Assembly (NCBI RefSeq): GCF_000143415.4
Contig: NW_003314378.1
Location: forward strand, 260,110-324,109
Source of the DNA: Selaginella moellendorffii
Taxonomy: Eukaryota > Plantae > Lycopodiophyta
Direction of reading: 5' to 3'
Length of the DNA stretch: 64,000 nt
Of the stretch, positions 9,134 to 64,000 are shown piece after piece. Within the stretch, counting starts at the first letter, position 1. Each line of letters begins with the position of its first letter. The notes under the pieces were generated by a model that saw only the letters and a program-made list of their open reading frames with translations, had not been told where the DNA came from and made no database searches. The position numbers and the translations under genes were made by a program.

Positions 9134-9799
9134 TCAAGTCATGCCGATGAGCTCTCTCAACTTCTGGATGAGACCACGGTCGTCAATCTGGAACGCTTTT
9201 GCGATCACGTTGTCGTTGATTGGAGGACTGGAATCAAACACCGCCTTGGCCACCTGAGTTGCCCCGGGGTTTTGGCTGTTGAAGCCAGCCATCGCAACCG
9301 CAGGCTCCTTTCCAACGTTGAGCTGGAAGTGAATGAGTCCCCGAGGGAAGACGAACAGATCTCCAGGATAGAGCATTTGGGCGAAGAGCTTGTTGTCCGG
9401 CAAGGTGGTGATGAATCCGACTAAGAGGTTCCCGTGCACGAGGAAGAGCAACTCGGATCCTCGGGGATGGACGTGGGGGGGATTGGTGCCGCCGGGAGCA
9501 TAGTCGATGCGGGCAAAAGCTACACCAAAGGTGTTGAGACCGGGGAAATTGTTGACACTCGCCAGCGTGACGTTGGAGCCGAGCTTGTTGTCGGTGTTCC
9601 CGGGAGTCGCCAGCAGGCTCGACTTGAAGTCCTCGGCTTTCACATCGGCGGCCGCCTTGCAGACGACGCCGTTCACTTTGATCTTGGAGCCATTGTCTGC
9701 AACGCAAAAGTCCTACAGCATATCTTCATCCGCAGCATGTACAAACAAGATGGAGCTGATTGCTAGGAGGAAGGATAGAACAAAACGAAGATGAGCCAT
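9134..9799 (-). pseudogene. Germin-like protein, unit 1, premature stop
   Basis: Germin boxes are present, but the Q of QDFCVAD is TAG (+ strand tcctacagca at 9711-9720). Several extra amino-acid changes. Confidence 0.85.
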
Positions 9800-11143
9800 C
9801 TTGCGAGCTTGGAAAAGACTGATGGAGCTATATGAGGGAGGGGCAGGCATTTTATAGCCGGAGGAGGGGAGGCGAGGTCCTTTGGATGACTTCGTCGTGA
9901 ATCGTGCACGATTTTAGGTACACGGTCTTCTGTTCCCTTCTATTTCATTTTTTACTCTTGCTGTCCGCATAACACAATCCGATTTGTTTGCTGCCAAGTC
10001 GTCTCGGAAGTTTTCTTTTACCGGGCTTGTCTAGAGCCGTCCAAATCATCTTTTCTTAGATGATGACGACCTTGGTTTTGATGGTAGGAACCGGTCTCAG
10101 TGAAACTCGAGTTTTACACGGTCTTGGTAAAAGCTTTACACTAAATTGCTTTATTCTTCTTGGCACCAGAGACTTTTTATATGTGGAGTTTTAATGGAAT
10201 TATTATGGATTGTGTAGGTCCATTGCTGATACAAATAAACTATGGGTATATCGACCAAAGGTACGTCTATGTAGGTTATCAATTTTGCAGACAATTATGT
10301 TGTCAGAAGGATAGTTGCTCACGTAGTCATGAGATATATATAGTCATAGTCATTGTGATTATTGTTTGCATCATTGTCATGGGCAAAATAGAATGTTTAT
10401 TGCTGCCACTTTATTAATCAATTTAATGCAATAAACTTATGATATTAAAAAAATTTATAATTTGTCCCACCATTGCAATCTAGGAAAGCATCCAGTTGGG
10501 GTGGTGGGAGTGAACTGAGAAATACTCATTTATTTCTCATGTGCTGCTGTGTGAGCATGTCAATCAATCAGCTGACCTCAGTATTAGTGGTCGTGGGCAG
10601 TGCATTCTAAAGCTCTTTGACTTGTTGGGCAAAGTCGGGCACCCATGCTGGCATGACTTGGTCGTGACCACAGCAAGTTTTGGTTGTTGATATGCAACTA
10701 GAACTTGTTTTAAACAGCATATGCATCCTAGTCAAACATGAGGCAGTTAAGAACTCTTGGAATTCCCCACTATTGCAAAGAAATAAAGAAAAAATATCAA
10801 TGATTACTCTATTTAACTTTCACTCACCATTTTGTTAAGGAAAAACTTAAACAATACACCACATTATTAAAGAATAGTTTAAACGACCAGGATGTAATCG
10901 TTTGTACTACTCCTATTCCATCTATAGTGCCCAATTGTGTAGTGCTGTTAACAATGTAAAGTTGGGAGGCGGCATTAGTCATGTGGATGTCCTCCGCTGC
11001 TGCCTGGTTCGAGGAGCCCTTCCACTGTTGTGAGTTGAGCCTGCAAAGTCTGTTGCAATATTAAAAACGTTTAATTGCCCAGCAAGCCTCACTGGTTTGA
11101 TCAGTCAGTGTATAGTTTTATCTTAAGAGTAACATTCCACGAA

Positions 11144-11317
11144 CTAGAGAGTAGAATTTAGATGCTCAACCAAAGTCCCACCCATATCCATAACCCACGC
11201 CTTGTCCACCAGTGGAATCAACTCTCTGCGAGGAAAGAAAATAAGATCCAAGCACTAATCACGCAAGTTTACCGCAGATCATGGCTCACAACGAGCAACG
11301 TCCTCTCCTTCTTTAAG
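11144..11317 (-). pseudogene. 3' end of an ABCI11/NAP14-like ABC ATPase (last exons), cut by the unit junction; repeated at 23612-23785, 32048-32221, 40309-40475, 48255-48428(+), 58173-58346
   Basis: Splicing a 47-bp GT..AG intron (11272-11226) gives LKKERTLLVVSHDLR|ELIPLVDKAWVMDMGGTLVEHLNSTL*, which contains the ABC H-loop VSHD. Confidence 0.75.
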
Positions 11318-11362
11318 TACGTGAGGTAAGAATGTAGATTGGAATTTTTGGTGAGGTGTTGC

Positions 11363-11512
11363 TTTAATGAAAGGTGAAACCGTGTGATGGTGCTCAAGAT
11401 CCGTCATAGCATATATGGAATGGAAAATGTACATATGTGTGACATGGTGAACCGGTGAAAACTCGTGTCTCTCCACGTGGACTAGCCACGTGGCACAGGG
11501 CCACTCTCAACA
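11363..11512 (-). repeat. 3' LTR of Copia-1 (~150 bp)
   Basis: Near-identical to 15598-15734; starts TGTTG on the - strand. Confidence 0.9.
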
Positions 11513-13140
11513 CTCCCAGTGGCACTGTGGCCATCACGAGTGATGCTCATCAGTGGAGAAAGTCCCAGCCCTTCGCGATGGACTTGAAATCGATCTTGGG
11601 GTAGTGCTTTTGTGAAGATATTTGCAACCTGAGTGGTTGTGTCACAGTAGATCAGCTCAATTGTGCCATCTTCCACTTTCTCACGAACAAAATGATGATG
11701 AATCCCAAAGTGTTTGGTGCGTGAATGAAAGCGAGGATTGGCCGCTAACGCAATGCAGCTTTGATTGTCGCAGAAGAGGCGAGTGGGAGTCTTCACACTC
11801 ACACCAAGGTTAGAAAGTAGTGAGCGTAACCACACACCTTCTTTGGTAGCTTGTGAGGCTGCCAAATATTCTCCTTCAGTACTAGAGGTTGCCACTGTAC
11901 TTTGCTTCCTGCTGCACCACGAGACTGTCGCACTGCCCAGGGAAAACGAATAGCCAGAGGTGGACTTGCGTGTGTCACAGTCTCCCCCAAAATCAGCATC
12001 ACAGTAGCCCGTGAGGGTAAGCGCTTTTCCCTGGTAGCACAATCCAAGGTAAGTAGTACCTCGAAGGTACCTGAAGATGCGTTTCACTGCTGCCCAATGT
12101 TGAGATCCAGGATTAGCCAGGAATTGGCTAACTTTGCTCACGGCAAAAGAAATATCTGGGCGCGTACAAACAGCTGGATACATGAGACTGCCAACAGCTT
12201 GTCTGTAAGGGATGGAGTCCATGGCTCTCTTGTCTTCCTCTGTCTCAGGAGACATGGCTCGTGAAAGCTGGCAGCCTAGTTCCATTGGTGTCGCCACTGG
12301 ATTAGAGCTCGTCATAGAAAACCTGGCCAGTATATCTTCTATATACTTGGCTTGGTGAAGATAGATAGTGCGTTGAGAGCGATCACGCACAAGTTCCATG
12401 CCAAGAAAGTAGGAAGCCGAGCCAAGAGTTTTCATCTCAAATTGGCTGCAAAGATCTCGCTTAACCTGGAGAAACATTAAGCGATGATTATGGATGACAA
12501 GAGTATCATCAACATAAAGAGCGATGATCACAAATGATTCACCCTCCACCCGAATATAAAGATTCGGGTCTGCCTCGCTACGGGAAAAGCCCACACTTAG
12601 TATAAAATTGTCAAAGCGTTTGTACCAAGATCTGGGTGCTTGTTTCAAGCCGTAGACAGCTTTCTTGAGAAGCCAGAGATGATCCTCTTTTCCAGCGGCT
12701 AGAAATCCTTCTGGCTGTGCCATATAGATTTCTTCTTCAAGCGCACCATAAAGGAATGCCGTGGTCACATCCATCTGTTCCAGATCAAAGTCTCCCACCG
12801 CAGCAAAATTAATCAAGGAACGAAGAGTAGAATGTTTAACCACTGGAGCGAAGGTGTCGTTGTAGTCAAGTCCAGGAACTTGCGAGCATCCTTTTGCCAC
12901 CAATCGCACCTTGTAGCGAACCGAGCCATCAGGATTAAGCTTCAGAGCATACACCCACATGCTCTTGATAATCTGGCGATTGGAAGGCACAGTTGGAACA
13001 AGAACATGTGTCTCGTTCTTTTGCTGTGAAGCAATCTCGGCTTCCATTGCTACACGCCAGTAAGACGCTTCCTGTGAGGCCATGGCTTCTCCATAGGTCC
13101 TCGGAACAGTAGGAGTCCCAGCTGCACGAGAGGAGACCAT
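11482..13140 (-). CDS. Copia reverse transcriptase-RNase H (open frame)
   Basis: KVRLVAKG, QMDVTTAFLYG, LYVDD, YCDADFGGD, CDNQS and RTKH motifs. Confidence 0.9.
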   Translation of the reverse strand: MVSSRAAGTPTVPRTYGEAMASQEASYWRVAMEAEIASQQKNETHVLVPTVPSNRQIIKSMWVYALKLNPDGSVRYKVRLVAKGCSQVPGLDYNDTFAPVVKHSTLRSLINFAAVGDFDLEQMDVTTAFLYGALEEEIYMAQPEGFLAAGKEDHLWLLKKAVYGLKQAPRSWYKRFDNFILSVGFSRSEADPNLYIRVEGESFVIIALYVDDTLVIHNHRLMFLQVKRDLCSQFEMKTLGSASYFLGMELVRDRSQRTIYLHQAKYIEDILARFSMTSSNPVATPMELGCQLSRAMSPETEEDKRAMDSIPYRQAVGSLMYPAVCTRPDISFAVSKVSQFLANPGSQHWAAVKRIFRYLRGTTYLGLCYQGKALTLTGYCDADFGGDCDTRKSTSGYSFSLGSATVSWCSRKQSTVATSSTEGEYLAASQATKEGVWLRSLLSNLGVSVKTPTRLFCDNQSCIALAANPRFHSRTKHFGIHHHFVREKVEDGTIELIYCDTTTQVANIFTKALPQDRFQVHREGLGLSPLMSITRDGHSATGSVESGPVPRG

Positions 13141-13159
13141 TGTCTCGATGAGACGCTCA

Positions 13160-13897
13160 GTAGGCTACTTCCAGACTTTCAAGGATATGGGAGAAACACA
13201 AACTGGGAAAATGCTCAAGCGATTGAGAAGTGATGGTGGAGGCGAATTCACTTCCAATGCTTTCAACCAGCTGTGTGAGCAAGGAGGGATTGTGCGAGAA
13301 CTTACAACGCGAGAGACTCCACAACAGAATGGCGTAGCTGAGCGCAAGAATCGCACACTAGTGGAGAGTGCTCGGGCAATGCTACTTTCCAGTGGTTTGC
13401 CTCGCAGCTTCTGGTTTCACGCTGTCTTGACGGCGAACTATCTCCAGAACCGGCTCCCCACCTCTGCCCTTGCTGGCATCACTCCTGAAGAAGCATGGAG
13501 TGGCAAGAAACCTACAGTTACGCATTGGGCACACATCCCTGATGGAATGCGCAAGAAATTGGACCCCAAGAGCCAGAAGGCTGTGTTTGTGGGCTACAGC
13601 CTCGATCACAAAGCCTATCGTCTCTGGAATCCAATCACGAAGCAGGAGATCCTGAGCAGAGATGTGGTTTTCAACGAGAATTCTTTTCTTCCTTCTAGTC
13701 AAGGTTCTACTTCCAGACCTACCTTGACCGAAGAAAATGACGTTGAAGCGGAACAAGATCAGTTGACTGTCGGCACGATCACTGTGCCGCTTCAAACAGT
13801 CCCTACGCAACAACCCATGCCCGCTTCTACTCCAACACCACCAGCCCCGCCGCCTCCTCCAGATCCTCTACGCAGATCGATCCGCACAAGGCGCACT
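13160..13897 (+). pseudogene. Copia integrase core/C-terminus, inverted relative to the element
   Basis: LRSDGGGEF, TPQQNGVAERKNRT, FVGYS..KAYRLW, SRDVVFNE. Confidence 0.9.
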
Positions 13898-13956
13898 GGA
13901 CGACTAAGAACCTGGATCTAGACTTCAACGAGTGGTGGGATTGGGTATCGGCACCC

Positions 13957-15453
13957 ATGGCAGCCACTGTTCCTACAAATCCGCCTCCAAATCCACCACC
14001 TATTTCCCCTCCCATCACAAATCCGACTGTGCCTACAGCGGATATCGTTTCAGTGGACGCAAATCCACCAAAATTTGATGGGAGCAACTGGTGCTTCTGG
14101 AAGACAAAATTCGAATCCTATATGGATGAACGAGGCCTCTGGGACATCACCACAGGAACTGAGACACTTCCAGATACAGCTACAGTGGATGAAACTGCGA
14201 AGTATCGCAAGAAGGACCGGAGAGCTTTGGGCAAATTCCATGCAGCGCTGGAGGGGCGAGAATTTCATTGCATTGGACGGTGCAAGAGTGCAAAGGAAGC
14301 GTGGGAGGCCATGAAGCAGACTTACCAGATCCCTTCAACATCCCATCGCATTTTTTTACGGAAGCAGCTTCATGCACTGGTGATGGCTGAAGGGGACGAC
14401 CTCAAGGATCATCTTGCTGCAGCGAGAACAATCTTAGATGATCTTAAGGATGTGGGAGCAAACATAGAGGATGAAGAAGAAGCAGAGCTGGTGCTCGTCA
14501 CACTTCCTCCATCCTTTGATCCTCTCATACGTAACAGCCTCCAGGACGATGATCTGAGACGAAGAGCAACAACAGGATCAGAGGCCGTTGCATTCTACTC
14601 TTCTCTCAGGAAAGAAACAGTGAACAAAGGGAAACAAGGAGCCTCTTCATCCAAGAAGCCCAAGTGTTCTCATTGCAACAAGAAAGGCCATGACGAAGCT
14701 CAATGCTGGGTGAAAAATCCATCTCTCAAGCCTGTAAGGAACAATGCAAAGAAAAAGGTGGTACACGCCTTCATCTTGTCACGAGCTATGGCAGTGGCAG
14801 CACTGTCTACAGAGTGCATCTACCTGGATTCTGCTGCTACAGACCATATGTTCAACAGTGATAAGTACTTTGAAGCCTATGATCCTACAGCCACAGAGGA
14901 GTATGTCATCGTTGGCAATGCCCAGCAGCTTGCTGTGAAAGGAATTGGAACCATCAAGTTGACTTTACCACAAGGAATAGTCGTAAAGATCCACAAGGTT
15001 ATTCCTGGTTTATGTGCTAATTTGTTCTCTGTGGGACAATTTGCTGAGGATGGGTATCAGTTCGCCATTACACCTCCCTTACCATGCTGCCAGATCTTGC
15101 TGGACGGAGTCTGGGCCTACACGCACAAAAGACAACGACCAGTCACTCACTGGAGCTTTGGCACGCACGCCTGGGGCATCCTAGTGCTGATAGAATCAAG
15201 CATCTCGCACGCGAGCAGATGGTTGAAGGTCTAGACCTGGACCCAAGAGCAGTTCTTCCATTGTGCCAGGGCTGTCAGCTAGGAAAATCTACTCGCCAAC
15301 CTTTCCCCAAGACTGGAGCATCTCGAGGAACTTGTACACACTGATGTGTGTGGCCCGATGGCCACCACAGCAGTGGGAGGTATCCAATACTTTATCAGTT
15401 TCATTGATGACTACAGTCGTCGCACTATGATCTACCCTATGGCTCGCAAATCC
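13957..15453 (+). pseudogene. Copia gag-protease-integrase N-terminus, inverted relative to the element, frameshifted
   Basis: KFDGSNW, CSHCNKKGHDEAQC, YLDSAATDHM, LWHARLGH..CQGCQLGK, CGPM..YFISFIDDYSR. Confidence 0.88.
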
Positions 15454-15585
15454 CAATCGTTACACCCTCTTGCAAGGCCTGGAGCGCTTGGATTAGGGCA
15501 TGCCTCTGTCCGGAGGCTCCGATTCACCCTAGCAAGTGTTGCCCTGATCCTATGGTTTCGAATTCTTCTCGCTCTCCCAGGCATT

Positions 15586-15597
15586 GCTCTGATACCA
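15586..15597 (-). promoter_or_regulatory. Primer-binding site complementary to tRNAi-Met (TGGTATCAGAGC)
   Basis: + strand gctctgatacca, abutting the 5' LTR. Confidence 0.92.
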
Positions 15598-15734
15598 TCT
15601 AACGAAAGGTGAAACCGTGTGATGGTGCTCAAGATCCGTCATAGCATATATGAAAATGTACATACGTGTGACATGGTGAACCGATGAAGACTCGTGTCTC
15701 TCCACGTGGACTAGCCACGTGGCACAGGGCCACA
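15598..15734 (-). repeat. 5' LTR of Copia-1 (~137 bp)
   Basis: Direct repeat of 11363-11512, flanked by PBS and TSD. Confidence 0.9.
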
Positions 15735-17884
15735 GTTGCTGATCTCTCTATCTCTTGAAGCGCCCGAAGAGACAACGCATGTTACTTTCGATGAATCGGC
15801 TGTTTCCCTCCCACAACCGGCCAAGACACACAACTCGGCTTGCAAAAATGGCGAAGAGGTTTGCAATTTTTTTTTTCCTTCTCTATATACTGAAGTCTCA
15901 AGCTTGCAGGGGTGCCAGAATGCTGAAACGGATTCTACCAGCCGGTGAGCTTGTTTTCTCGCGTGGCTATTGGTGAAATTCATGGTGTTCTTGCTTTTTA
16001 AGGTTGCTTCGACTCGACTATGCTGCCGCGATGCGTCCCCATCCTGAGAAGGTGCAAAGCTTACTTGCTAATTTTTGTAGATCTTCTAAGCTTTGCTGTT
16101 TACAGGCTCAAAGAGGGGGTGAAGATGATTTCTTCACTGAAGGCTCCTGGATGGGTGTTGCTGATGGTGTTGGGGGCTGGGCCGGAGAAGGTAAGAAAAA
16201 TCTTTCTTTGAGTATGTTTCTTCAAAAGAGTTTTTACTGGTTTTCAGGCATTGATTCGGGGATGTATTCTCGGGAGCTTATGGGACATTGTAAGGCATTG
16301 GTTGTAAACAGCAAAGGGAAACTGGACCCCAAGGACGTGCTTGTCAAAGCCGCCGGCAGTACAAAGGCCCAGGGATCAGCAACGGTCCTTGTGGCTGCAT
16401 TGTTTGAGCAAGTAAGCTAGTCGGATTTGATGTTTGAGTCTGAGTCGGGTCATATATTTCAGACATGTACGCAGCAAAATTGGGAGACTTGGGTTCATCA
16501 TAGTTCGCAATTGGGAGCCCATGCAGCATAGTTTTAACTTTCCGTTTCAAGTTGGAACTTTTGGTGACCATCTTTTCCCTTAACTTTGCTAATTTTCCGT
16601 CTACAGGAATTCAAGATCCCTGTCTGCAAGGGGGACATCATTGTTTTGGGAACTGATGGCCTTTTTGACAATCTCTTCAACGACGACATAATCGAAGTTC
16701 TTAAAAAATCTCTTGGGTCCGACCAAGTCAACTTGAAAGTGAACTCTCGCTGTTGAAGAATCTCAAGATTGCTAATATTCTCTTCACTTTACAGGCATGT
16801 AGCTGGGGCGCAGGCCGAGCGTTTGGACAATTGGAGCGGTGGAAAGCGACGTGATATTTGAGTCGCGAAGGGTAAACTTTTCAAGCAGTTTTTGCGGAGG
16901 CCAGTGTATAGGCCGCGGTATTTCCGGTTCTTACGCTAATTGAGCACCCTTTTGATTGGCTCATCTTCGTGTCTTTGGTGTCCAGCCTTCATTAGAAACT
17001 GGTTTAAATCGCAGGTAACTGCTGCTGAATCTTCCTTTAAGAAATCAAGGTTTTGTTCCATCAGAAGGTTCACAGCCTGGAAGTTCTAGCCTCACTGGAG
17101 ATTGAACTCCGGACAGGACAGGTATCTCTTCTGTTTAGAGGGAACTGCTCAGGGTGTTAGACGTGCCAGGGAATCAGTTCAGCTGGACGATCACGAGCCG
17201 GCAACATGATCTCTGGCTCGTCCTTCTCGGGGGTACATGGAGCTGCTAGGCCTTTGGCGCGATGGGATCTTTCGCGACTGCGTGGCTCTCCAGGAGCTCT
17301 TCAACAGTCTCACTCCCCCATCCAGCAGCAAACTCCGGAATCTCATGCTCGGCTCTACATCTCTCAGCCATCCAAGTGGGTGTGCGGGCTTGGAAGTGCT
17401 CGAACAACGTTTCGGAAGAGCTGTGTGGGCCGTATCTTGTCTCTCAGCTTGGGCAGACTCTTTGAGTTTACTCGGATCTCTCGGAGAACCGGTTGGAGGG
17501 GCTGGTTCTGAAGGACTAAGTGGTGGAAACCCTGCTACGGTCGGATAGCAACAAAGAGCTCACGGAGAACAGCTTGAAGGACAGCTCCAGGCAAGCTCGT
17601 GTGGAGGATCCTTGGATACCGCTCTCGTCCCAGTACCGTGAGACTCCACCAGAAAGATGGTGAGCGACGAAGGCAATTGGCTGGAGCCGTGACTTCCTTC
17701 TTCGTCTCGAGTATTTGGTCGCGTGTCCCGTCCACATGGTAAGCCACGGAATTGTTTCTTAGTTGCTCAAATCTTAATTCTTTCTGATCTCCAGGTTGGT
17801 AATCACCATCACCAACTAAGAGGAATTTTTTGCTTTGAGGTGGAGTTCGGTAGGCGACGAAGAAAAACTTTCCAGGATGGGAGG

Positions 17885-19180
17885 ATGAAAAGTTACAGCC
17901 CGAGCTTGCTGTTCTTCGTGCTCCTCTTCTCCGCTGCGGCACTGCTACTCGTATGGGTTCTCGACATAAATTCCGACTCCGCGATGATGTCCCGGAGCCG
18001 AACTATGGGATCAAACTTCCGCATCAGCAACAACACCACAAGCTACAAGGGCAGCGACACTTGCAGGAGTAGGAACGAGTACGACTTCTACAGCCGCCGA
18101 AGATCGACGAGCTTCGAGCCATCCGAGTCGCTCCACCGGAAAATCCTAGAGTACGAGGCTTTGCACGGGAGGTGCGCTCCGGGGCCCGAGCAGTGCGCGA
18201 ACTGTAGTACATGCGGCTACCTCGTCAATGTTCCCGCCAGCCAGGGGATCGGCAACAAGGTGGTGGCTATAGTAGCAGCGTTTCTCTACGCGCTGCTCAC
18301 CGACAGGACGATGTTGATCGCGAGGTTGGAGAACCTGGACACGCTCTTCTGCGAGCCGTTTCCATCCAGCTCCTGGCTGCTGCCGTCGAGCTGGAAGCAC
18401 CTCGAGTTGGCGCCGTGGGACGCCTCCAAGTGGATTGGGAGCCTGGCGGGATCGCCCAACTGCAGCCGCGGCGTCGACGTGAGCTTCCCCGAGGTGGTGG
18501 TGGCCTAGGACAAGGCCTTCTTCTGCCAAGACCACAGCAGGAGGCCATCTTCCATCTCCTGGTGAGGTACCGGTTGCTTCCCAGTGACTTCGTGTGGGAC
18601 AAGGCGGCCAGGTACTACGACGCGTACCTGGCCCAGGCCGAGCTTCTAGTTGGGGTCCAGCTGCGAAGCCACATCTGCCCAACCTCGCCGAGGATACGTT
18701 CGACTGCCTGGTGCAACAAGGCCCGCTCGCAAACACCACCCAGGAGCGAGCTCCCAGATCGTCGGTGAGGAAGAACAGCAAGAAGGTGGCGGTGTTGGTG
18801 GTGTCGCTCAATTCGCAGTACTCGGAGACGCTCAAGAGCAAGGTGCTGGGATACGATCTAGCGGACGGTTCCTCGGTGTCCATCCACCAGCCGAGCGTGG
18901 AGGGGGTGCAAAACACAGGGAACTTGGATCACGACGCACAGGCGGTGATGGAGATCTACTTGCTGTCGATGAGCGATGTCCTGGTGACGAGCCCGCAATC
19001 CACGTTTGGCTACTCGGCGGCAGGGGTGGCGGGCGTGCGGCCCGTGCAGTTTGTGTGCGACCAGAGAGCGTGGTTTGCTCGGTGAGGGAGACGATGGAGC
19101 CGTGCTACCACGTTTATCCGGCTCAGTTCGCGTTGGGCAACATTGAAAAGTGCGAATGCGGCGTGGGTTCAAGCTTTTAA
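17885..19180 (+). pseudogene. GT37 fucosyltransferase copy U2
   Basis: Deletion-induced stop at 18506-18508 and further frameshifts. Confidence 0.88.
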
Positions 19181-21686: not shown

Positions 21687-22352
21687 TCAAGTCATGCCGA
21701 TGAGCTCTCTCAACTTCTGGATGAGACCACGGTCGTCAATTTGGAACGCTTTCGCGATCACGTCGTCGTTGATTGGAGGATTGGAATCAAACACCGCCTT
21801 GGCCACCTGAGTCGCCCCGGGGTTTTGGCTGTTGAAGCCAGCCATCGCAACCGCAGGCTCCTTTCCAACGTTGAGCTGGAAGTGGACGAGTCCCCTAGGG
21901 AAGACGAACAGATCTCCAGGATAGAGCATTTGGGCGAAGAGCTTGTTGTCCGGCAATGTGGTGACGAATCCGACTAAGAGGTTCCCGTGCACGAGGAAGA
22001 GCAGCTCGGATCCTCGGGGATGGACGTGGGGGGGATTGGTGCCGCCGGGAGCATAGTCGATGCGGGCAAAAGCTACACCAAAGGTGTTGAGACCGGGGAA
22101 ATTGTTGACACTCGCCAGCGTGACGTTGGAGCCGAGCTTGTTGTCGGTGTTCCCGGGAGTCGCCAGCAGGCTCGACTTGAAGTCCTCGGCTTTCACATCG
22201 GCAGCCGCCTTGCAGACGACGCCATTCACTTTGATCTTGGAGCCATTGTCTGCAACGCAAAAGTCCTGCAGCATATCTTCATCCGCGGCATGCACAAACA
22301 AGATGGAGCTGATTGCTAGGAGGAAGGATAGAACAAAACGAAGATGAGCCAT
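21687..22352 (-). CDS. Germin-like protein (cupin), intact, 221 aa
   Basis: Signal peptide, box A QDFCVAD, box B GTNPPHVHPRGSE, box C GLVHFQLNVG. The true start is MAHLRF because the upstream ATG overlaps the TATA box. Confidence 0.93.
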   Translation of the reverse strand: MAHLRFVLSFLLAISSILFVHAADEDMLQDFCVADNGSKIKVNGVVCKAAADVKAEDFKSSLLATPGNTDNKLGSNVTLASVNNFPGLNTFGVAFARIDYAPGGTNPPHVHPRGSELLFLVHGNLLVGFVTTLPDNKLFAQMLYPGDLFVFPRGLVHFQLNVGKEPAVAMAGFNSQNPGATQVAKAVFDSNPPINDDVIAKAFQIDDRGLIQKLRELIGMT

Positions 22353-49625: not shown

Positions 49626-49675
49626 TGCCTGCCCCTCCCTCATATAGCTCCATCAGTCTTTTCCAAGCTCACAAG

Positions 49676-50341: not shown

Positions 50342-52217
50342 AAGTTTCTCCAAAGGTTGCGAGGCTGACTTGACTAAGTTACATATATAAATAAATTATT
50401 TTTCCAAAGCTCTTACCTTTCGGAAACTTTCGTAAGCACAGCTAGATCGCTTTCCCGCCAATTTCCATTTTAAACACGGTCCTGGAGCGATTTGCCAGGA
50501 CATACGTCGATCCAATGCCCGAAACATATCGTAATGCGATCGGCAAGATGCCACCAAAACCCTACAAACCAGAGCATCCGGCACAAACGGCATGGCACCA
50601 GCAATTCCTCGGCATTCTCCAGTTGCCTGCCACGGCCGAAGATATCGATCATGCAGACGAAGTGATCACTGCCTGGCGCGATCCTAAAATCCCCTGTCAC
50701 GAGAAGAAAGAAATCCTTATTGCGATTCACGGAGCTGATGTAGGCGCAGGCCGGAGTGTCACCTTTCCCATTGCGCCCTTGCCTCAATGAGCAAACGCAG
50801 TGATCCCTTTATGCAGCATTGTAATGGGCTAAAGGTGACACTGTAGTGAAGTGAGGTCCATGATCTTACAATGTTCAAGGGAAAGACCAAAACTACACCT
50901 TGTCAACTCACCCAAGCCCTCTCTAAGGGGCTTTTGGCAAGATGACAAAGTATCTCCTTTAGCCTACTTTGAGAGGATTTCGGGATTTACCTGGACGTAT
51001 TTGAGTGTACTGCATATAATAATCAAGTGGCTGGACATGAGAAGGTTCTGTATGGCTCTATCAGGAGAGGCACAGAGAATGTTTGTTTCATGCTGTGCAC
51101 GAGATCAGATTGTTTGGTTGGATGAAGCAGTGGACTCGATTTCCAGGCTGTTGTGATGTTCAATTAAGATTGCATTATCGAGATTGGAATCACAAGAACA
51201 TGGAAAGAACTGGACGTGTCTCCCAGCGTGGTGCGTGTTTCGTCCGGGAATTAATCTTGTGATGTTTGCTCGAGGCGATGTAGCCTTGATTGTCACAGTA
51301 GATTGGTGTTGGGCCGGGTGTCGTTGAGGAGGCGGCGAAGCCAGATGGCCTCTTTGCATGCGGAACTAGCCTCCGCCTCACAGCTGGAGCAGGCAACGAC
51401 GCTCTTCTTCTTGCTGCTAACTGCATTGTGAAGGCTAAACAATTTAGCCAAAGCCAGCCCAGTAAGCTTGACTCGTGGCCTTAAGACCGCAAGAAAACGT
51501 ATCTCGGAAGTACGAAAAGACGCGTTTTAGTCAATGTTGAGGTCCAGGATTGTCAAGGGTTCTTGCACAAAGTGGAATTCGAATGGATTAGCGCACCTTC
51601 CATGGCGTCCATATCCCCTCTATAACTAGAAAAAAAACACACTCCAACAAGCGAACGAAGCATTTTCCTAGGCTATGGCATTGAACACAAGGCTTACAAG
51701 GTCTACAATCCTGTCTCCAAGGCGCTGATCATCTCACCAGACGTGCATCCAATGAGACTCCATCACGTCAAGTGGGAGAAAATCTGCCTTTGCCAGTGCT
51801 GCCCAATGCCCAATCCGAACGACCTGCGAATCTTCAAGACTCACTGCAGCCGCTCCTCTTTGCAGATCTTCTCGCCAGAACAAGGGCAAGCCACCACCAC
51901 GGCTGATTGCTCGCAGCTGTACACGACATCCCTGAAAGTCTTGTGGAGACTTTGAACTTCTGGGAATTCCAAGCGGCTCTCAAGTCTCTTGAAGTTGACA
52001 GGGAAAAATGGAAAGTTGCCTTTATCATTCCCCTCACCTTGGTGAGACAAGCGCCTCCTGGACGCATGCTGGGTGTGTGACTGTAATGGGAGGGAGCGGA
52101 GGTGCGGAAGAATGGGAAAAGAAGTGGAGGTGGAGGATTTGGAGAATTCACCGCCAGATGGAAAGAGCCTGACGTGTCTTCTTGCGTGACGTGTCAGCCA
52201 CGTGGCTGTCCGCCTCT

Positions 52218-52463
52218 TCAATCATGATGGTGGTTGTCCTCGGAAGGGCCGGAGGGTGGCGTGGGCTGACCCTGGATGAGCATTCTCCGGGAGGTCCTTT
52301 CGAGAAGAGTGTGGATCTTGTTAACAACAGGAAGGCGCAATTCGGAATTGAAAAGCTCGGCCTGCTGGCTCATCACCGAAAACGAGCCCGGCCTGGAACA
52401 TTTGATGTTGCCGCTGATCATGATCACCAATGCGATGGCAACAAGCATCCTTCCACGATCCAT
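52218..52463 (-). CDS. Secreted-peptide precursor U5 (C-terminus QPTPPSGPSEDNHHHD)
   Basis: Intact ORF. Confidence 0.68.
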   Translation of the reverse strand: MDRGRMLVAIALVIMISGNIKCSRPGSFSVMSQQAELFNSELRLPVVNKIHTLLERTSRRMLIQGQPTPPSGPSEDNHHHD

Positions 52464-52705
52464 TCCAGCCACAAAAGCACTAAACGTAGTGATGATATCG
52501 TTGTATAAGAACCAAGAGCTGTGCTTGCTCCGATACGATTGGATCCAATGGGCCTCCAGTGTTTTATATTCACAGAAAAAGTTCTTCACCGGGCTTGGTA
52601 AACAGTCAAGTCCTTTGCGCGTGCCAATGTCAAAACAAGACTCGTTAGCTTCCAAGCCAGAACACTCTACGAGCAGTTTTTCAAAGTCCTGCACAAAAGA
52701 CAGCT

Positions 52706-53239
52706 GCTGCCCTAGCAAATGGGCTGTCCAAACGCTCGGCCTGCGCCCCAGCTATATGCCTGTAAAGTGAGGAGAATATTAGCAATCTTGAGATTCTTCA
52801 ACAGCGAGAGTTCACCTTCAAGTTGACTTTGTCGGACCCAAGAGATTTTTTAAGAACTTTGATTATGTCGTCGTTGAAGAGATTGTCAAAAAGGCCATCA
52901 GTTCCCAAAACAATGATGTCCCCCTTGCAGACAGGGATCTTGAATTCCTGTAGACAGAAAATTAGCGAATTTAAGGGAAAAGCAAGAATACCTCTGCAAC
53001 CGTTGGATGGTCACCAAAAGTTCCAACTTGAAACAGAAAGTTAAAACTATGCTGCATGGGCTCCGAGCTTGCAACTACTTGCCAATTGCGAACTATGATG
53101 AACCCCGAGTCTCCCAAGCTTGCTGCATACAGTGTCTGAAACATATGACCCGACTCAGCCTCAAACATCAAATCCGACTAGCTTAGTTGCTCAAACAATG
53201 CAGCCACAAGAACCGTTGCTGATCCTTTGGCCTTTGTAC
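52706..53239 (-). pseudogene. PP2C copy U5, middle/3' fragment (5' fragment at 40476-40715)
   Basis: Homology to PP2C exons; bounded by Copia-2 and by a deletion that removed the fucosyltransferase. Confidence 0.82.
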
Positions 53240-56200
53240 TGTGGAGACAATTGATGACAAGTCTCCACATCAGCAAAAAAGACATGTCATTCATCCAAGA
53301 CACCAACCACCAAGAGTCACACCCATACTGTTATGTACATAACCATACCAAAGCAATGAAGTCGATAGAGCATTCTGCGTACACTGGCAAACACAGCAAC
53401 ACAACGAGCAGGACCACGCTAGGGCTCTTGTAGTCCTTGCTAGGGTGGAACGACAGATTCAAGAACGCAAGTGAGCACAACATGATGTCCATCCGTGCTT
53501 CTACCCTAATTGTCGCTCTATGTGCATGGCGTATGGGCGTCCCTTCCAGTGATTCCCACTGCCTCTTCCCCGCCCCTGCCCCCGCCCCCGCCCCCCCCCC
53601 CCCCCCCCTCGCTTCTAGCTTACTCTATTGTTTTGTCCTTTCTTCTAGAAACTAATGGCTACCAGTACTCCACCTCGCACTACATCTAGAACCACCCTAG
53701 CGAGCACCATGGCCATCCTGGCTGGCAACTAAGATGTAGGATGGGAGAAGCTACTCTAGAAGTTCACAGGCGAGAACTTCACAACTTGGAAGACCAAAGT
53801 CCAATTAATCCTAATGGCAAAAAATTGTTGAGATTTGGTGGAGGGAACCGAAGTGAGACCTCAAGATATAGAAGCAGCCTTGCAAGCTACTTAAGACTCT
53901 AAGAACGGCAAAGCCCTTTCCGTGATTGGACTAGGTCTTGGAGATGAATTTATTCATCTCCTTGATCTAGAAAAATCCGCCAAGGCCAATTGGGACTCCC
54001 TTTCCCAAGTCTTTGTAGCCAAAGCTGCTAATGCTAAATTGGTTCTGACCCAGAAATTTTTCTCCCTATGCATGCAGCCTGGTGAGATGATGGCAACATA
54101 CATTGGGAAGCTCAAGGGTTTAATGCAGCAGCTGAAGGAAGTAGGTGCTGCAGTTTCCGATGACTATGCAAAAGCCTTCTTGCTCTACTCTGTATCTTAA
54201 GAGTTGCAACAATTGTCCTCCATGCTTTCTTTTGTCCCAGGCAAAACCATGGAGGAGCTCTACTCTGATCTACTCAAGGAAGAGCACAAGATTGCTGAGC
54301 GTCAAGCTGGCCATCAAGGATCCCCTCAAGCTGCTCGCGAGCAGGCCTTGTTTCTTGGTAAGAAACAATCGAGTGGGGAGTAGAGGAAAGGAGGCACTAG
54401 CCGTGGGCCTCGTATCTCTTCTGCTACAACTCCCAGCTCTTGATTTAACTTCTCCAAGAAGAAAAAAGGTCCTTGCAACTATTGTGGAAAGATGGGGCAT
54501 GTCGAGTGTGAGTGTTGTGCAAAGAAGGCTGCCACCCAGCACATGCTTACCCAGAGCAACTTGTTGTTGATGATGGCTCTTTACCCGTCACCGGTGTCTG
54601 CTCTTGAGGTTCTATGGCTGGATAGTGGTGCCTCTTTTCACATGACTCCCTTAAGGTCTGCCTTTCACACTTACAAGGCTCTTCAAGCTCCACAACAGGT
54701 TTATGTCGGCGACAAGCGACCACTCTAGGTGGAAGGTCGTGGCATGGTGGTGATCAGGCTATCCACTGGACCTTTTAAGGAGGTTCATCACGTGCACTTT
54801 GTACCTGAAGCAGCACATACAGTTCTTTCTATAGGTGTAGCCTCAGATCAAGGCTTTACTACCACCTTCTTCCCAAAAGGGTGCACCATCTATGGTCGTG
54901 ATGGTACTTCTGTAGCTAGTGGCATGAGGTATGAAACACTCTACTGTTTAAATGCAGAATTGGTTTTTCCAACTCAAGTGCTTGCTTTCTGAGCACAAGA
55001 CACCATTGAGCTCTGGCATGCTCGTCTGGGGCATGTCAATGAACGAGATCTACATGCCTTGGCTCGTAACCAGCATGCTAAAGGCATCATGCTCCCAACT
55101 GGCCATCTAGGCGTGTGTGAAACTTGCTATCTTGGGAAGCAAGTTCACCTTCCTTTTCCATCAAGAACCATGGAGGACCAAGCTACAGGCTTATTGGATC
55201 TGGTTCACAATGACGTGTGCTACTTGCCATGGAAACACTCAGCCACAAGAGGTACTTTGTGTCTTTTATCAATGACCATTCCAGATATGCTGTGGTGAGC
55301 CTTCTCCATGCCAAGAGCGAAGTGTTCAACCACTTTAAGCTTTTTAAGAGCTGGGCAGAGACGTCTACTGGCCAAAAGATTCGTGTGTTACGCACAGATG
55401 GTGGTGGAGAGTACCTGAACAAAGAGTTTCTCAACTTTCTAGCTGAGGCTAGCATTGTTCACCAGTACACAACAGCCCATACTCCCCAACAGAACGGCAT
55501 GGCAGAGCACCTCAATCGCATGCTACTAGAGACTGTTTGTTGCCTTCTCCAACACACAAGCATACCCAACTCTTTTTGGGGTGAAGCCATTAACACGGTT
55601 GTTTATATCCGTAATCGCCTTCCCACAAGGAGCACTGGTGTGGTTCCTTATCAAGCTTGGACTGGGAAGTGTCCTCAGTTAGGGCACTTGAGGGTCTTTC
55701 GCTGCACAATGTATGCTTGCATTCCAGATGCGACTCGGCAGAAGCTGGATCCTAGGAGCCAGAAGACCATCTTCGTGGGCTATCATGCTCATTCCAAGGC
55801 CTATCACCTACCTCTATAATCTTGCTCTCAAGAAGCTCGTGGTCAGCCAAGATGTCTCTTTCAATGAGCAAGATCTTTATCGCCACATTCAAGGTACTAT
55901 TCCTTCAAGTTCTAACTTGGTGGACTTGACCCCAGTGCTGGAAGACGAGCTCACCCACCCACCAACACCAGCAATCCAAAGGCTACTCGTTCCAGAAGGA
56001 GGAACACCTCTTCCACTTGGTGATGAACCTTCTCCAGCAACTCTGCTGCTACCAGTTCCTCTAGTCACTTCGGTGGCTACTAGCAGCAACACTACTTCAT
56101 CCAATGAGCAGAATCTTGCTGCTACTGTGGACGAGTTGTTCATTGGTGAAGAAACAGTTGGAGGATCTTCCCGCTCACCTCCTCCAGATTCTCTCATGAC

Positions 56201-56780
56201 ACCACCACCTCGTCAAGAGATTGGAGCTATTACCTGTTTAGGACAAGTGAGCAAGCCAACGGTCAAAGCTCTAGAATCTCTTGCTCAAGCTCCATGCAAG
56301 AAGGGATTCTACTGGGCCATGAGCTCCATTGTTGAACCTCGTGGCTACCAAGTTGCTCTCTCCAATCCTGATGCCTCACAGTGGCAAGCAGCCATGCAGG
56401 ACGAGTATGACTCATTGATCAAGAATGGAATCTGGACATTGGTTCCCCTCCCTCCCGGCAGGAAGGCAGTCACAGCCAAATGGCTGTTCAAGAAGAAATA
56501 TCGAGCTGATGGCAGCATTGAGCGCTACAAGGCACACTTTGTAGCTCGTGGTTTCTCTCAGATCCAAGGAGTTGATTACTCTCAAACTTATAGCCTTGTT
56601 ATAAAGCTGACAACAATTTGTGTTTTGATGAGTCTTGCAGTTGAGCTCGACCTGGAGCTCCATCAACTTGATGTGAGAACTGCATTCCTGAATGGTGATC
56701 TTGAGGAGGAGGTGTATGTTGCCCAGCCTCCTGGATTTATACGTCCCGGACAAGAGCATCTAGTCTGCCGCTTGCACAAG
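53240..56780 (+). mobile_element. 5' part of Copia-2 (leader, gag, protease, integrase, RT N-terminal half), degenerate
   Basis: KFTGENFTTWK, a zinc-knuckle remnant, WLDSGASFHM, LRTDGGGEY, HQLDVRTAFLNG..VCRLHK. Many stops and frameshifts; no intact LTR or PBS recognised. Confidence 0.88.
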
Positions 56781-57160
56781 ACTAAGAGGTTCCCGTGCAC
56801 GAGGAAGAGCAGCTCGGATCCTCGGGGGTGGACGTGGGGGGGATTGGTGCCGCCATGAGCGTAGTCAATGCGGGCAAAAGCTACACCAAAGGTGTTGAGA
56901 CCGGGGAAATTGTTGACACTCGCCAGCGTGACGTTGGAGCTGAGCTTGTTGTCGGTGTTCCCGGGAGTCGCCAGCAGGCTCAACTTGAAGTCCTCGGCTT
57001 TCACATCGGCGGCCGCCTTGCAGACGACGCCGTTCACTTTGATCTTGGAGCCATTGTCTGCAACGCAAAAGTCCTGCAGCATATCTTCATCCGCGGCATG
57101 CACAAACAAGATGGAGCTGATTGCTAGGAGGAAGGATAGAACAAAACGAAGATGAGCCAT
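56781..57160 (-). pseudogene. 5' half of U6 germin-like gene at the right inversion breakpoint
   Basis: MAHLRF...HGNLLV, then runs into antisense Copia RT. Confidence 0.9.
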
Positions 57161-58346: not shown

Positions 58347-59645
58347 TACGCGAGGTAAGAATGTAGCTTGGAAGTTTTGGTGAGGTGTTGCTGGTCTCTC
58401 TATCTCTTGAAGCGCCCGAAGAGACAACGCATGTTACTTTCGATGAATCGGCAGTTTCCCTCCCACAACCGGCCAAGGCACACAACTCGGCTTGCAAAAA
58501 TGGCGAAGAGGTTTGCAATTTTTTTTCCTTCTCTATATACTGAAGTCTCAAGCTTGCAGGGGTGCCAGAATGCTGAAACGGATTCTACCAGCTGGTGAGC
58601 TTGTTTATTTTCGCGTGGCTATTGGTGAAATTCATGATGTTCTTGCTTTTTAAGGTTTCTTCGACTCGACTATGCTGCCGCGATGCGTCCCCATCCTGAG
58701 AAGGTGCAAAGCTTACTTGCTAATTTTTGTAGAACTTCTAAGCTTTGCTGTTTACAGGCTCAAAGAGGGGGTGAAGATGCTTTCTTCACTGAAGGCTCCT
58801 GGATGGGTGTTGCTGATGGTGTTGGGGGCTGGGCCGGAGAAGGTAAGAAAAATCTTTCTTTGAGTCTGTTTTTCCAAGAGTTTTTACTGGTTTTCAGACA
58901 TTGATTAGGGGATGTATTCTCGGGAGCTTATGAGACATTGTCAGGCATTGGTTGTAAACAGCAAAGGGAAACCGGACCCCAAGGACGTGCTTGTCAAAGC
59001 CGCCGGCAGTACAAAGGCCCAGGGATCAGCAACGGCAGGGATCAGCAACGGTCCTTGTGGCTGCATTGTTTGAGCAAGTAAGCTAGTCGGATTTGATGGT
59101 TGAGGCTGAGTCTGGTCATATATTTCAGACACTGTACGCAGCAAACTTGGGAGACTCGGGGTTCATCATAGTTCGCAATTGGCAAGTAGTTGCAAGCTCG
59201 GAGCCCATGCAGCATAGTTTTAACTTTACGTTTCAAGTTGGAACGTTTGGTGACCATCCGACGGTTGCAGAGGTACTCTTGCTTTTCCCTTAAGTTCTCT
59301 AATTTTCCGTCTACAGGAATTCAAGATCCCTGTCTGCAAGGGGGAAACCATTGTTTTGGGAACTGATGGCCTTTTTGACAATCTCTTCAACAACGACATA
59401 ATCGAAGTTCTTAAAAAATCTCTTGGGTCCGACCAAGTCAACTTGAAGGTGAACTCTCGCTGTTGAAGAATCTCAAGATTGCTGAGATTCTCTTCACTTT
59501 ACAGGCAGCTGCAGCAGACCTTGTAGCTGGGGCGCAGGCCAAGCGTTTGGACAGCCCGTTTGCCAGGGCGGCTGCAAAGGCGAGAATGAATTGGAGTGGT
59601 GGAAAGCTAGATGATACCACGGCAGTTGTGGCGTTTGTGACGTGA
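58347..59645 (+). pseudogene. PP2C copy U7
   Basis: No exon 1, in-frame TAG (attgattag, ~58900), 16-bp duplication at 59020-59051. Confidence 0.83.
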
Positions 59646-60404: not shown

Positions 60405-61259
60405 GGTGGTGGTTGTTTCCCCGAGGTGCTGGTGGCCTATCTCGATTACAACTACAGGGACCAGGACAAGGCCTTCTTCTGCCAAGATCAACAGCAAGCT
60501 CTCAACTCCAGCGCGCGGTGGATCGTCCTCTCCTCCGGCCAGTACATCACTCCGGCGCTCTACAACGTCCCGGCTTTCAGGAGCAAGCTCGAGGAATGGT
60601 TCCCATAGCAGGAGGCCATCTTCCATCTCCTGGTGAGGTACCTGTTGCTTCCCAGTGACTTCGTGTGGGACAAGGCGGCCAGGTACTACGACGCGTACCT
60701 GGCCCAGGCCGAGCTTCTAGTCGGGGTCCAGCTGCAAAACCACATCTGGTTCTCGCCACCCAACCTCGCCGAGGATACATTCGACTGCCTGGTGCAACAA
60801 GGCGCGCTCGCAAACACCACCCAGGAGCGAGCTCCCAGATCGTCGGTGAGGAAGAACAGCAAGAAGGTGGCGGTGCTGGTGGTGTCGCTCAACTCTCAGT
60901 ACTCGGAGACGCTCAAGAGCAAGGTGCTGGGATACGATCTAGCGGACGGCTCCTCGGTGTCCATCCACCAGCCGAGCGTGGAGGGCGTGGAAAACACGAA
61001 GAACTTGGATCACGACGCACAGGCGGTGATGAAGATCTAGTTGCTGTCGATGAGCGATGTCCTGGTGACGAGCCCGCCATCCACGTTTGGCTACTCGGCG
61101 GCGGGGCTGGCGGGCGTGAGGCCCGTGCAGTTCGTGTGCGACCAGAACAAGAGCGTGGTTTGCTCGGTGAGGGAGACGATGGAGCCGTGCTACCACGTTT
61201 ATCCGGCTCAGTTCGCATTGAAAAGTGCGAATGCAGCGTGGGTTTCAGACTAGTCTATA
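60405..61259 (+). pseudogene. GT37 fucosyltransferase copy U7, 5' half deleted, nonsense codons
   Basis: Starts near FPEVLVAYLDY; stops at 60608 and 61040. Confidence 0.85.
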
Positions 61260-61706
61260 GAAAGTTCTTAAAGCTTTTAAAATTTTATTTTCTTTCTCGT
61301 GATAGATTTCTAAGTTGCTCCTTGGCTGCATGATGCAAATCTAGCGTCATTTGTAGATTTGCGTGGTCAGGTCATGCTCTTGGCCCACGCAAAGTTGCGC
61401 CAAGGCTGCCTTGAAATCCAGGTAATTTGGTACCAAGAGCTTATAGACTTCAAATGGCGAGCTGTCTTTTGGGCAGGACTTTGAAAAACTGCTCGTAGAG
61501 TGTTCTGGCTTGGAAGCTAACGAGTCTTGTTTTGACAGATGGCACGTGCAAAGGACTTGACTGTTTACCAAGCCCGGTGGAGAACTTTCTGTGTGAATGA
61601 ATATAAAGCACTGGAGGCCCATTGGATCCAATCGTAGCAGAGCAAGCACAGCTCTTGGTTCTTATACAACGATATCATCACTACGTTTAGTGCTTTTGTG
61701 GCTGGA

Positions 61707-61949
61707 ATGGATCGTGGAAGGATACTTCTTGCCATCACATTGGTGATCATGATCAGCGGCAACATCGATTGTTCCAGGCCAGGCTCGTTTTCGGTGATGA
61801 GCCAACAGGCCGAGCTTTTCAATTTCGAATTGCGCCTTCCTGTTGTTAACAAGATCCACACTCTTCTCGAAAGGACCTCCCGGAGAATGCTCACCCAGGA
61901 TCAGCCCACGCCAGCTCCCGGCCCTTCCGGGTGCTGCCACGATAAGTGA
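61707..61949 (+). CDS. Secreted-peptide precursor U7 (C-terminus QPTPAPGPSGCCHDK)
   Basis: Intact ORF. Confidence 0.68.
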   Translation: MDRGRILLAITLVIMISGNIDCSRPGSFSVMSQQAELFNFELRLPVVNKIHTLLERTSRRMLTQDQPTPAPGPSGCCHDK

Positions 61950-63809
61950 AGAGGCGGACAGCCACGTGGCTGACACGTCACTCTAGGAGACACGTCAGGC
62001 TCTTTCCATCTGGCGGCGAATTCTCCTCCAAATCCTCCACTCCTTTCCCCATTCTTCCCCACCTCCGCTCCCTCCCATTACAGTCACACATCAATTTACC
62101 CAGCTTGCGTCCATGAGGCGCTTGTCTCACCAAGGTGAAGGGGAATGATAAAGGCAACTTTCCATTTTTCCTTGACTTGGGAGCTGCGTGGAATTCCTAG
62201 AAGTTCCACTCCAGCAAGTAAAGTCTCCACAAGACTTTCAGGGATGTCTTGCACAGCTGCGAGCAATCAGCCGTGGTGGTGGCTTGCCCTTGTTCTGGCG
62301 AGAAGATCTGCAAAGAGGAGCGGCTGCAGTGAGTCTTGAAGATTCGCAGGTCGTTCGGATTGGGCATTGGGCAGCACTGGCAAAGGCAGATTTTCTCCCA
62401 CTTGACGTGATGGAGTCTCATTGAAATGCACGTCTGGTGAGATGGTCAGCGCCTTTGAGACAGGATTGTCGATCTTGTAAGCCTTGTGTTCAATGCTATA
62501 GCCTAGAAAAATGCCTCGTTCGCTTGTTCGAGTGAGTTTTTTTCTAGTTTTAGAGGGGATATGGACGCTATGGAAGGTGCACTAATCCGTTCGAATTCCA
62601 CTTTGTGCAAGAACCTTTGACAATCCTGGACCTCAACATTGGCAAACACTTAAACGTAGATTTGTTTTCTTACAGTCTTAAGGCCACGAGTCAAGCTTAC
62701 GGGGCTGGCTTTGGCTAAATTGTTTAGCCTTCACAATGCAGTTGGCAGCGAGAAGCAGAGCGTCGTTGCCTGCTCCAGCTGTGAGGCGGAGGCTAGTTCC
62801 GCATGCAAAGAGGCCATCTGGCTTCGCCGCCTCCTCAACGACCACCCGGCCCAACACCAATCTACAGTGACAATCAAGGCTACATCGCCTTGAGCAAACA
62901 TCACAAGATTAATTCCCGGACGAAACACACACCACGCTGGGAGACACGTCCAGTTCTTTCCATGTTCTTGTGATTCCAATCTTAATAATGCAATCTTAAT
63001 TGAACATCACCACAGCCTGGAAATCGAGTGCACTGCTCATCCCACCAAACAATCTGATCTCGTGCACAGCATGAAACGAACATTCTCTGTGCCTCTCCTG
63101 ATAGAGCCATACAGAACCTTCTCATGTCCAGCCACTTGATTATTATATGCAGCACACTCAAATACGTCCAGGTAAATCTCGAAATCCTCTCAAAGTAGGC
63201 TAAAGGAGATACTTTCTCATCTTGCCAAAAGCCTCTTCTAACACATGCTTGAGGATTAGAGAGGGCTTGGGTGAGTTGGCAAAGTGTAGTTTTGGTCTTT
63301 TTCTTGAAAATCATGGACCTCACTTCACTACCGCATAAAGGGATCACTGCGTTTGCTCATTGTGGCGAGGGCGAGAAAGTCCTCGATGGGAGCGTGGAAG
63401 GTGACATTCCGGCCTGCGCCTACATCAGCTCCGTGAATCGCAACAAGGATTTCTTTCTTCTCGTGACAGAGGATTTTAGGATCGCGCCAGGCAGGGATCA
63501 GTTCGTCTGCATGATCGATATCTTCGGCCGTGACAGGCAACTGGAGAATGCCGAGGAATTGCTGCGTGCCATGCCGTTTGTGCCGGATGCTCTGGTTTGT
63601 AATGTTTCGGGCATTGGATCGACGTATGTGCTGGCAATTCGCTCCAAGAGAGTGTTTAAAATGGAAATTGGCGGGAAAGCGATGTGTTTGTTTTTTATTC
63701 TATCTAGCTGTGCTTACGAAAGTCCCACTATCGAAAGGTGACAGCTTTGGAAAAATAATTTAATTATATATGTAACTTAGTCAAGTGTGCCTCGCAACCA
63801 GAGAGACTT

Positions 63810-64000
63810 TCAAGTCATGCCGATGAGCTCTCTCAGCTTCTGGATGAGACCACGGTCGTCAATCTGGAACGCTTTCGCGATCACGTCGTCATTGATTGGA
63901 GGATTGGAATCAAACACCGCCTTGGCCACCTGAGTTGCCCCGGGGTTTTGGCTGTTGAAGCCAGCCATCGCAACCGCAGGCTCCTTTCCAACGTTGAGCT
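63810..64000 (-). CDS. Germin-like protein U7, 3' end only (continues beyond window)
   Basis: QLNVGKEPAV...KLRELIGMT*. Confidence 0.8.
   Translation of the reverse strand, partial: LNVGKEPAVAMAGFNSQNPGATQVAKAVFDSNPPINDDVIAKAFQIDDRGLIQKLRELIGMT

Follow-up and report, generated by a model that had tools for sequence, protein, structure and literature searches.

Purifying selection on several copies of a tandemly amplified germin-like protein gene in Selaginella moellendorffii

Are the near-identical germin-like proteins (GLPs) encoded by a tandem gene array kept alike by selection on the individual copies and, if so, are these copies retained for the amount of product that they provide? This question is raised by a stretch of 64,000 nucleotides from the lycophyte Selaginella moellendorffii (GL377682.1:260110-324109, assembly GCA_000143415.2; hereafter the window), and we find that several of its GLP copies are under purifying selection. 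Self-BLAST and unit alignment delimit at least seven tandem units of 8.2-8.7 kb each between 2582 and 64000 (lettered A to G below), which start at 2582, 11324, 23787, 32222, 40477, 48253 (inverted) and 58347 and are collinear once an inversion is undone. Each unit contains, in this order, a PP2C-like gene (+), a GT37 xyloglucan-type fucosyltransferase gene (FUT, +), transposon relics and a GLP gene (-). The initial annotation let the array begin at 9134, but self-BLAST places its start at 2582, to the left of which no repeated sequence is found. At the other end, the array extends ~0.9 kb beyond the window into the adjoining locus L003, where its last unit, that of the GLP copy U7, is completed.

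The four GLP copies initially described as intact all proved to be so: U2 (21687-22352, -), U3 (30093-30758, -), U4 (38359-39024, -) and U5 (49676-50341, +), the latter located in the inverted segment, in a unit without FUT and most of PP2C. The total on the scaffold is nevertheless five, since U7, of which only the 3' end lies in the window (63810-64000, -), is also intact (full copy at L003:10001-10666) and encodes a protein identical to the common product. As had been noticed, the proteins of U2 to U5 (221 amino acids) are the same except for V98I in U2 (ARIDY vs ARVDY) despite multiple silent differences, as their 666-nt coding sequences (CDS) vary at 13 synonymous sites and a single replacement site. 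The annotated start is MAHLRF (221 amino acids); the upstream ATG of a 238-amino-acid open reading frame (ORF) overlaps the TATA box. Among the 13 GLP copies examined (11 intact), eight encode one identical protein. Two window copies are dead. U1 (9134-9799, -) carries a CAG>TAG change at codon 29 (9713-9715), and U6 is split by the inversion into a 5' half with three replacements (nt 1-381; 56780-57160, -) and a 3' half with none (nt 387-666; 41616-41895, +). The replacements attributed to U6 (KLSLL, KLSSN and YAHG) are all present, and the sequence reported as lost next to its TATA box is a 25-bp deletion directly after CTATAA, at ~57187, 27 nt upstream of the ATG. For U1, the TAG and the GFITT, LIHF, DSS and DNV variants were all recovered, but only TAG, GFITT and DSS are private to it: LIHF and DNV (V156I and D197N) also occur in Hd, an intact copy on scaffold GL377681.1, and therefore two of the four replacements of U1 are not decay.

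The array provides its own neutral expectation. From the spectrum of 523 singleton mutations located outside GLP in the aligned units, in which C>T dominates, a neutral replacement fraction of 0.69 is predicted for the GLP CDS (as global MAFFT alignment of whole units misaligned unit E where its FUT is missing, columns 3400-4200 were dropped for this unit). Observed replacement:silent counts depart strongly from this fraction, both at the variable sites of U2-U5 (1:13, p = 2e-6) and among the nine distinct intact CDS from the window, L003, L008 and L006, including copies from two other scaffolds (5:25, p = 4e-9). Changes private to a single intact copy show the same asymmetry (2:10, p = 3e-4), and thus constraint acts on individual copies, not just on one master copy. 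In the FUT pseudogenes of the same units the ratio is 39:31, which differs from that of intact GLPs (Fisher p = 3.6e-4). Using the Nei-Gojobori method, the five intact window copies have a silent divergence (dS) of 0.046 and a replacement divergence (dN) of 0.0008 (ω = 0.017), and ω is 0.037 over all intact copies. The dN/dS ratio is thus ~0.02-0.04, and not near 1. As flanking and pseudogene sequences of the same units diverge by 0.020-0.045, GLP silent sites are at least as diverged as their flanks, and replacement sites are ~50-fold more conserved; therefore, homogenisation alone cannot explain the identity of the GLPs. In the nine intact CDS, segregating sites fall on first, second and third codon positions in numbers of 7/0/23, and no indel is found where ~4 would be expected from the indel-to-substitution ratio of the pseudogenes (P = 0.016). 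Of the initial proposal that purifying selection on multi-copy GLP maintains the array, selection on several copies thus stands, and maintenance of the array, as opposed to that of each gene, does not follow.

The fate of the genes that were duplicated together with GLP differs. The parental FUT1 (4968-6419, +) is intact, with 483 amino acids from MKSYSPS and a match to Pfam XG_FTase (E = 4e-87, profile positions 38-470 of 475). All extra FUT copies are frameshifted, stopped or deleted, in agreement with the initial annotation, and those of the window bear two to three lesions each, mostly independent and at different places: frameshifting deletions of 115, 10 and 4 nt in pseudogene 2 (17885-19169, +); frameshifts by deletions of 1, 34 and 1 nt in pseudogene 3 (26034-27485, +); deletions of 1 and 4 nt in pseudogene 4 (34501-35935, +), of which an exact inverted copy lies at 44542-45976 (-); and absence of the 5' 600 nt, two stops and a 10-nt deletion in pseudogene 7 (60417-61257, +). 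FUT has been wholly lost from unit E. Five further FUT copies, located beside intact GLPs on GL377681.1 and GL377838.1, are all broken as well, with lesion sets partly shared with the window and partly new, which brings the number of independent inactivation paths to at least six.

Similarly, the catalytic exons of the PTC7-like PP2C parent (2907-3882, +) are all open, and such open exon blocks are found in unit A only. The extra copies all carry stops or frameshifts, again as first described. They are located at 16007-16854 (+, unit B), 24100-24992, 32535-33456, 47011-47940 (-) and 58659-59645, with an additional fragment in unit E (52710-53241, -). Two lesions are common to units B, C, D and F, namely a deletion of 2 nt within one exon and a defect of the last exon; unit G is disabled by a stop of its own and by an insertion of 16 nt. 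We take these exons, recognised by their motifs, to be of the PTC7 type; an exon-by-exon Pfam search yielded a single weak PP2C hit (E = 0.15), and a gene call on the sister scaffold carries a weak SpoIIE/PP2C mark. The duplicated segment begins at 2582, between any start exon, which must be located further left in unrepeated sequence, and the first catalytic exon (~2907). It is thus probable that the extra PP2C copies were born 5'-truncated, without start and promoter, and their loss therefore says little about selection.

These observations are best explained if a segment made of a 5'-truncated PP2C, a complete FUT and a complete GLP was amplified by unequal crossing-over to at least seven tandem units, linked by occasional gene-conversion tracts. 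The two passenger genes have decayed in the extra units, and purifying selection has preserved the GLP copies along with their TATA-box promoters of 230 bp, most likely because more copies would yield more of the same product. The GL377682.1 haplotype carries five genes for essentially one predicted secreted Mn-cupin protein. The regulatory region is also conserved: positions -230 to -1, which include the TATA box, are nearly identical in all intact copies, with 13 of 229 sites variable and three gapped columns, vs 16 of 117 sites and 69 gapped columns in the next 170 nt upstream, and 19 of 114 sites and 102 gapped columns in the first 200 nt downstream of GLP (14-17% of sites thus vary in these outer stretches, where indels abound). 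In U3, for example, this proximal promoter is located at 30759-30988 and contains CTATAAAA ~51-58 nt upstream of the ATG. Dosage would be the simplest reading of identical proteins driven by identical proximal promoters, the copies being expected to add up in output. We thus consider amplification, passenger decay and retention of GLP, most likely for dosage, to be on balance the probable history of this locus.

Several observations weigh against this history. The contrast between intact and dead GLPs, which was proposed as a check, is weak (Fisher p = 0.06): sites seen only in the dead copies U1 and U6 have a replacement:silent count of 6:7, which is not different from neutral (p = 0.07), and decay of the dead copies does not reach significance. 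Two of the seven GLP copies on GL377682.1 are already dead. Identical tracts of 0.45-3.2 kb, including 360 bp of the U3 and U4 CDS, indicate that copies are not fully independent lineages. Farther from the gene, the promoters are set apart by indels, such as the loss of 27 nt in U4 and differences of 13 and 18 nt elsewhere, so that the regulation of the copies may have diverged. Finally, GLP copy number is visibly not fixed, as GL377681.1 has four GLPs between its first copia element and the end of the array vs six, five of them intact, on GL377682.1. Copy number is thus not constant between the two scaffolds (4 vs 6), whose strict allelism is unproven.

The last two points are also those which support retention of the copies for a reason other than dosage, such as subfunctionalisation by tissue, stress or timing, or robustness, total product not being selected. 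Promoters differ by many indels beyond approximately -230, and the number of copies differs between scaffolds. The proteins are identical, however, and the proximal promoter (230 bp, TATA box included) is nearly so in every intact copy, which speaks against this reading. We consider this explanation rather unlikely, although it deserves to be taken seriously.

The comparison between scaffolds bears on a further explanation, namely that copy number is partly an assembly product. The S. moellendorffii assembly is known to hold both haplotypes, and repeat-induced joins in such a two-haplotype Sanger assembly could have made the array longer than it really is. In support of this explanation, the assembly gap lies within sequence identical to unit E, unit F equals unit D over 3.2 kb, and the 15-kb scaffold GL377838.1 carries two further units with CDS equal to those of U3 and U4. 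However, the flanks of these two units match the window at 93-99% only, U2, U3, U4, U5 and U7 each have private silent variants and different flanking lesions, and both junctions of the inversion lie inside contigs, are reciprocal and show microdeletions. In addition, the selection result is independent of the exact count. A copy number partly inflated by assembly is thus improbable.

The inversion itself (41616-56779, 15.2 kb) splits both U6 and copia element 2, and its reversal in silico makes the whole array collinear and places all GLPs on the minus strand. Its first junction cuts U6 after CDS nt 381, the sequence resuming at nt 387 with 5 nt lost. The second cuts the copia reverse transcriptase between ...HLVCRLHK and ALYGLKQ..., with ~2 nt lost, and leaves the element in two pieces (40716-41615 and 53242-56779). 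Such microdeletions are as expected from end joining. On GL377681.1 (L008:9643-17989), copia element 2 is uninterrupted and the units beside it are collinear; thus, the inversion is real and private to GL377682.1. The four GLPs of GL377681.1 are all in one orientation, and both copia insertions are shared by the two scaffolds.

The assembly gap (42993-43100) is located in the inverted segment, ~1.1 kb downstream of the U6 3' half. Its 108 N stand for ~105-115 bp of collinear intergenic unit sequence, its edges are in register with the other six units and it interrupts no coding sequence. The adjacent sequence on either side equals that of unit E over 897 bp, a probable cause of the break in the assembly. 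We also considered whether the inverted near-duplicate beside the gap could be a haplotig, and rejected this reading, as high identity is limited to 5.5 kb (of which 3.2 kb identical), identity falls to 95% in the adjoining GLP region and the two junctions of the inversion are reciprocal.

Units also exchange sequence, and gene conversion between them is evident from tracts of perfect identity, against a background divergence of 2-5%. Units D and F are identical over 3,212 bp (33939-37150 vs 46538-43327, now inverted) and differ by 1-4% in other parts; units E and F are identical over the 897 bp mentioned above; and units C and D share two such tracts, one of 903 bp and one of 450 bp, 360 bp of the latter being CDS. 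Mosaic site patterns are seen within the GLP CDS. The D-F tract may reflect either recent conversion between inverted repeats or misplacement of Sanger reads. On the basis of these tracts and mosaic patterns, conversion or unequal crossing-over might be thought to keep the GLPs alike without any selection on extra copies. Conversion does lower the independence of copies, yet it is blind to codon position and cannot create the replacement:silent asymmetry, whereas variable sites are distributed 7/0/23, replacement divergence is ~50-fold below a silent divergence that equals that of the flanks, changes private to single copies are 2:10, and FUT and PP2C of the very same units have not been kept intact. 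Homogenisation without selection is thus contradicted and very improbable. Still less credible is a young neutral array in which GLP ORFs are open because the gene is short and little time has elapsed: divergence is indeed modest (2-6%) and, at the lesion rate of the FUT pseudogenes (~1.2 disabling lesions expected per neutral 666-bp ORF), one copy would stay intact with P ~0.29, but five would do so with P ~0.002, and the replacement:silent asymmetry (p = 4e-9), which is independent of ORF length, contradicts it.

What the retained copies encode can be judged from homology. The GLP matches Cupin_1 (PF00190) in Pfam with E = 1e-48 and 165 bits (cut-off 22) over profile positions 3-147 of 151, and its best solved relative, by PDB sequence match, is barley germin/oxalate oxidase (E = 7e-53), with which it shares ~50% identity over the whole mature chain (PDB 1FI2, 2ET1, 2ETE, 2ET7). 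The Mn ligands (H88, H90, E95 and H137) align, within PPHVHPRGSE and GLVHFQ vs PPHIHPRATE and GLMHFQ in 1FI2/2ETE, and are unchanged across all intact copies. The N-terminal Cys pair, Asn85 and Gln139 align as well. As judged from the alignment only, the mature barley chain begins at residue 24 of the query, which leaves a hydrophobic leader of 22-23 residues before it. Unlike in barley germin, the position of Asn75 is occupied by Ala (FARVDY), so that the Asn75/Asn85/Gln139 set of the true germin active site is incomplete in this alignment; Ala is also found there in the 2ET7 chain (ARVDF), vs NRVDF in 2ETE. Asn75 is required for oxalate oxidase activity, and superoxide dismutase (SOD)-type activity is the commonest assignment for GLPs that are not oxalate oxidases. 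Because Asn75 is replaced by Ala, a true germin is not expected, and the predicted protein is more likely an SOD-type or other non-oxalate-oxidase GLP. V/I98, the sole polymorphic residue among window copies, is a conservative difference two residues C-terminal to the Asn75 position. A literature search for open papers mentioning Asn75 found none, and a search on Selaginella germin-like proteins returned nothing specific.

Retention of GLP alone in the extra copies is the ordinary pattern for germin-like gene clusters, and no new mechanism or protein family is revealed by this locus. The OsGLP cluster on rice chromosome 8 is reportedly a quantitative disease-resistance locus, and its members, a tandem GLP family as in Selaginella, are said to contribute additively; they are also said to be more diverged from each other, unlike the essentially identical Selaginella proteins. 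GLP tandem clusters under purifying selection are routine in family surveys of angiosperms. The closest parallel is the HvGER4 cluster of barley (4HL), a dense tandem of near-identical genes for a secreted GLP with conserved promoter and CDS, for which a dosage hypothesis has already been put forward, high transcript level being hypothesised to shape the locus (PMC4302706). The Selaginella array differs in being that of a lycophyte and not of a cereal, in that its unit drags along two other genes as pseudogenes, and in that one copy is split by an inversion. GLP amplification for dosage might thus be an ancient and recurrent strategy of land plants, with the Selaginella array as a functional analogue of the GER4 and OsGLP8 defence clusters, but we regard this extension as tentative and doubtful. 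If it is correct, Selaginella, whose lineage parted from that of seed plants ~400 million years ago, would have amplified GLP on its own, shedding the passengers, and copy number would still vary between haplotypes through unequal crossing-over.

The locus extends the GLP-cluster pattern of angiosperms to a lycophyte and is a clean natural experiment, in that three genes were co-duplicated, FUT arrived complete and only GLP was kept. The pseudogenised neighbours supply a neutral baseline within the locus for mutation spectrum, indel rate and replacement:silent ratio, which turns the observation of identical proteins into a quantified signal of selection. Moreover, copy-specific silent single-nucleotide polymorphisms (for example at CDS nt 102, 129, 135, 192, 306, 474, 480, 540 and 606) make dosage testable at this locus.

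Other features concern the history and the borders of the array. Copia element 1 (11364-15739, -) has long terminal repeats of ~140 bp that are 96% identical, and is flanked by a 5-bp target duplication (GTTGC). As its insertion is also present on GL377681.1, the two scaffolds diverged after insertion. The ~3.6% divergence of its terminal repeats is similar to the divergence between units. At the right end, U7 (63810-64000; L003:9592-10000) has only ~400 bp of upstream sequence in common with other units vs ~1.5 kb among internal units, which shows that this end was remodelled. The GL377682.1 and GL377681.1 arrays do not match in their right-hand flanks (L001:1-9000 vs L003:1-9000), which reflects either a large insertion or scaffolds that are not simply allelic at that end. 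Beyond the last GLP, GL377682.1 carries aminotransferase, ODP/flavin-reductase, ribosomal P-protein, EF-hand and transferase genes. On GL377681.1 (L008:2725-3665), a gene call of 208 amino acids with a PAP2 domain is located in a ~870-bp insertion just downstream of the terminal GLP; the window lacks this insertion.

Just left of the array, an ORF of 588 amino acids (180-1946, +) with FG/FxF and Ser/Thr/Ala/Pro repeats has no Pfam match and looks like an FG-nucleoporin-type low-complexity protein. Two ORFs located directly downstream of GLP copies (8728-9150 and 63271-63741, +) gave a sub-threshold Hisat_C match alone in Pfam. By eye, they resemble a pentatricopeptide-repeat protein in its C-terminal part (...MIDIFGRGR.NAEELLRAMPFVPDAL...) and are probably a gene relic carried within the unit. 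Finally, public annotation places genes of 167 amino acids (24124-24843, +) and 198 amino acids (47398-49244, -), both without Pfam match, on PP2C pseudogene copies, and lets one GLP gene model of GL377681.1 span 19.5 kb (L008:10001-29561); all three models are annotation artefacts of the repeat.

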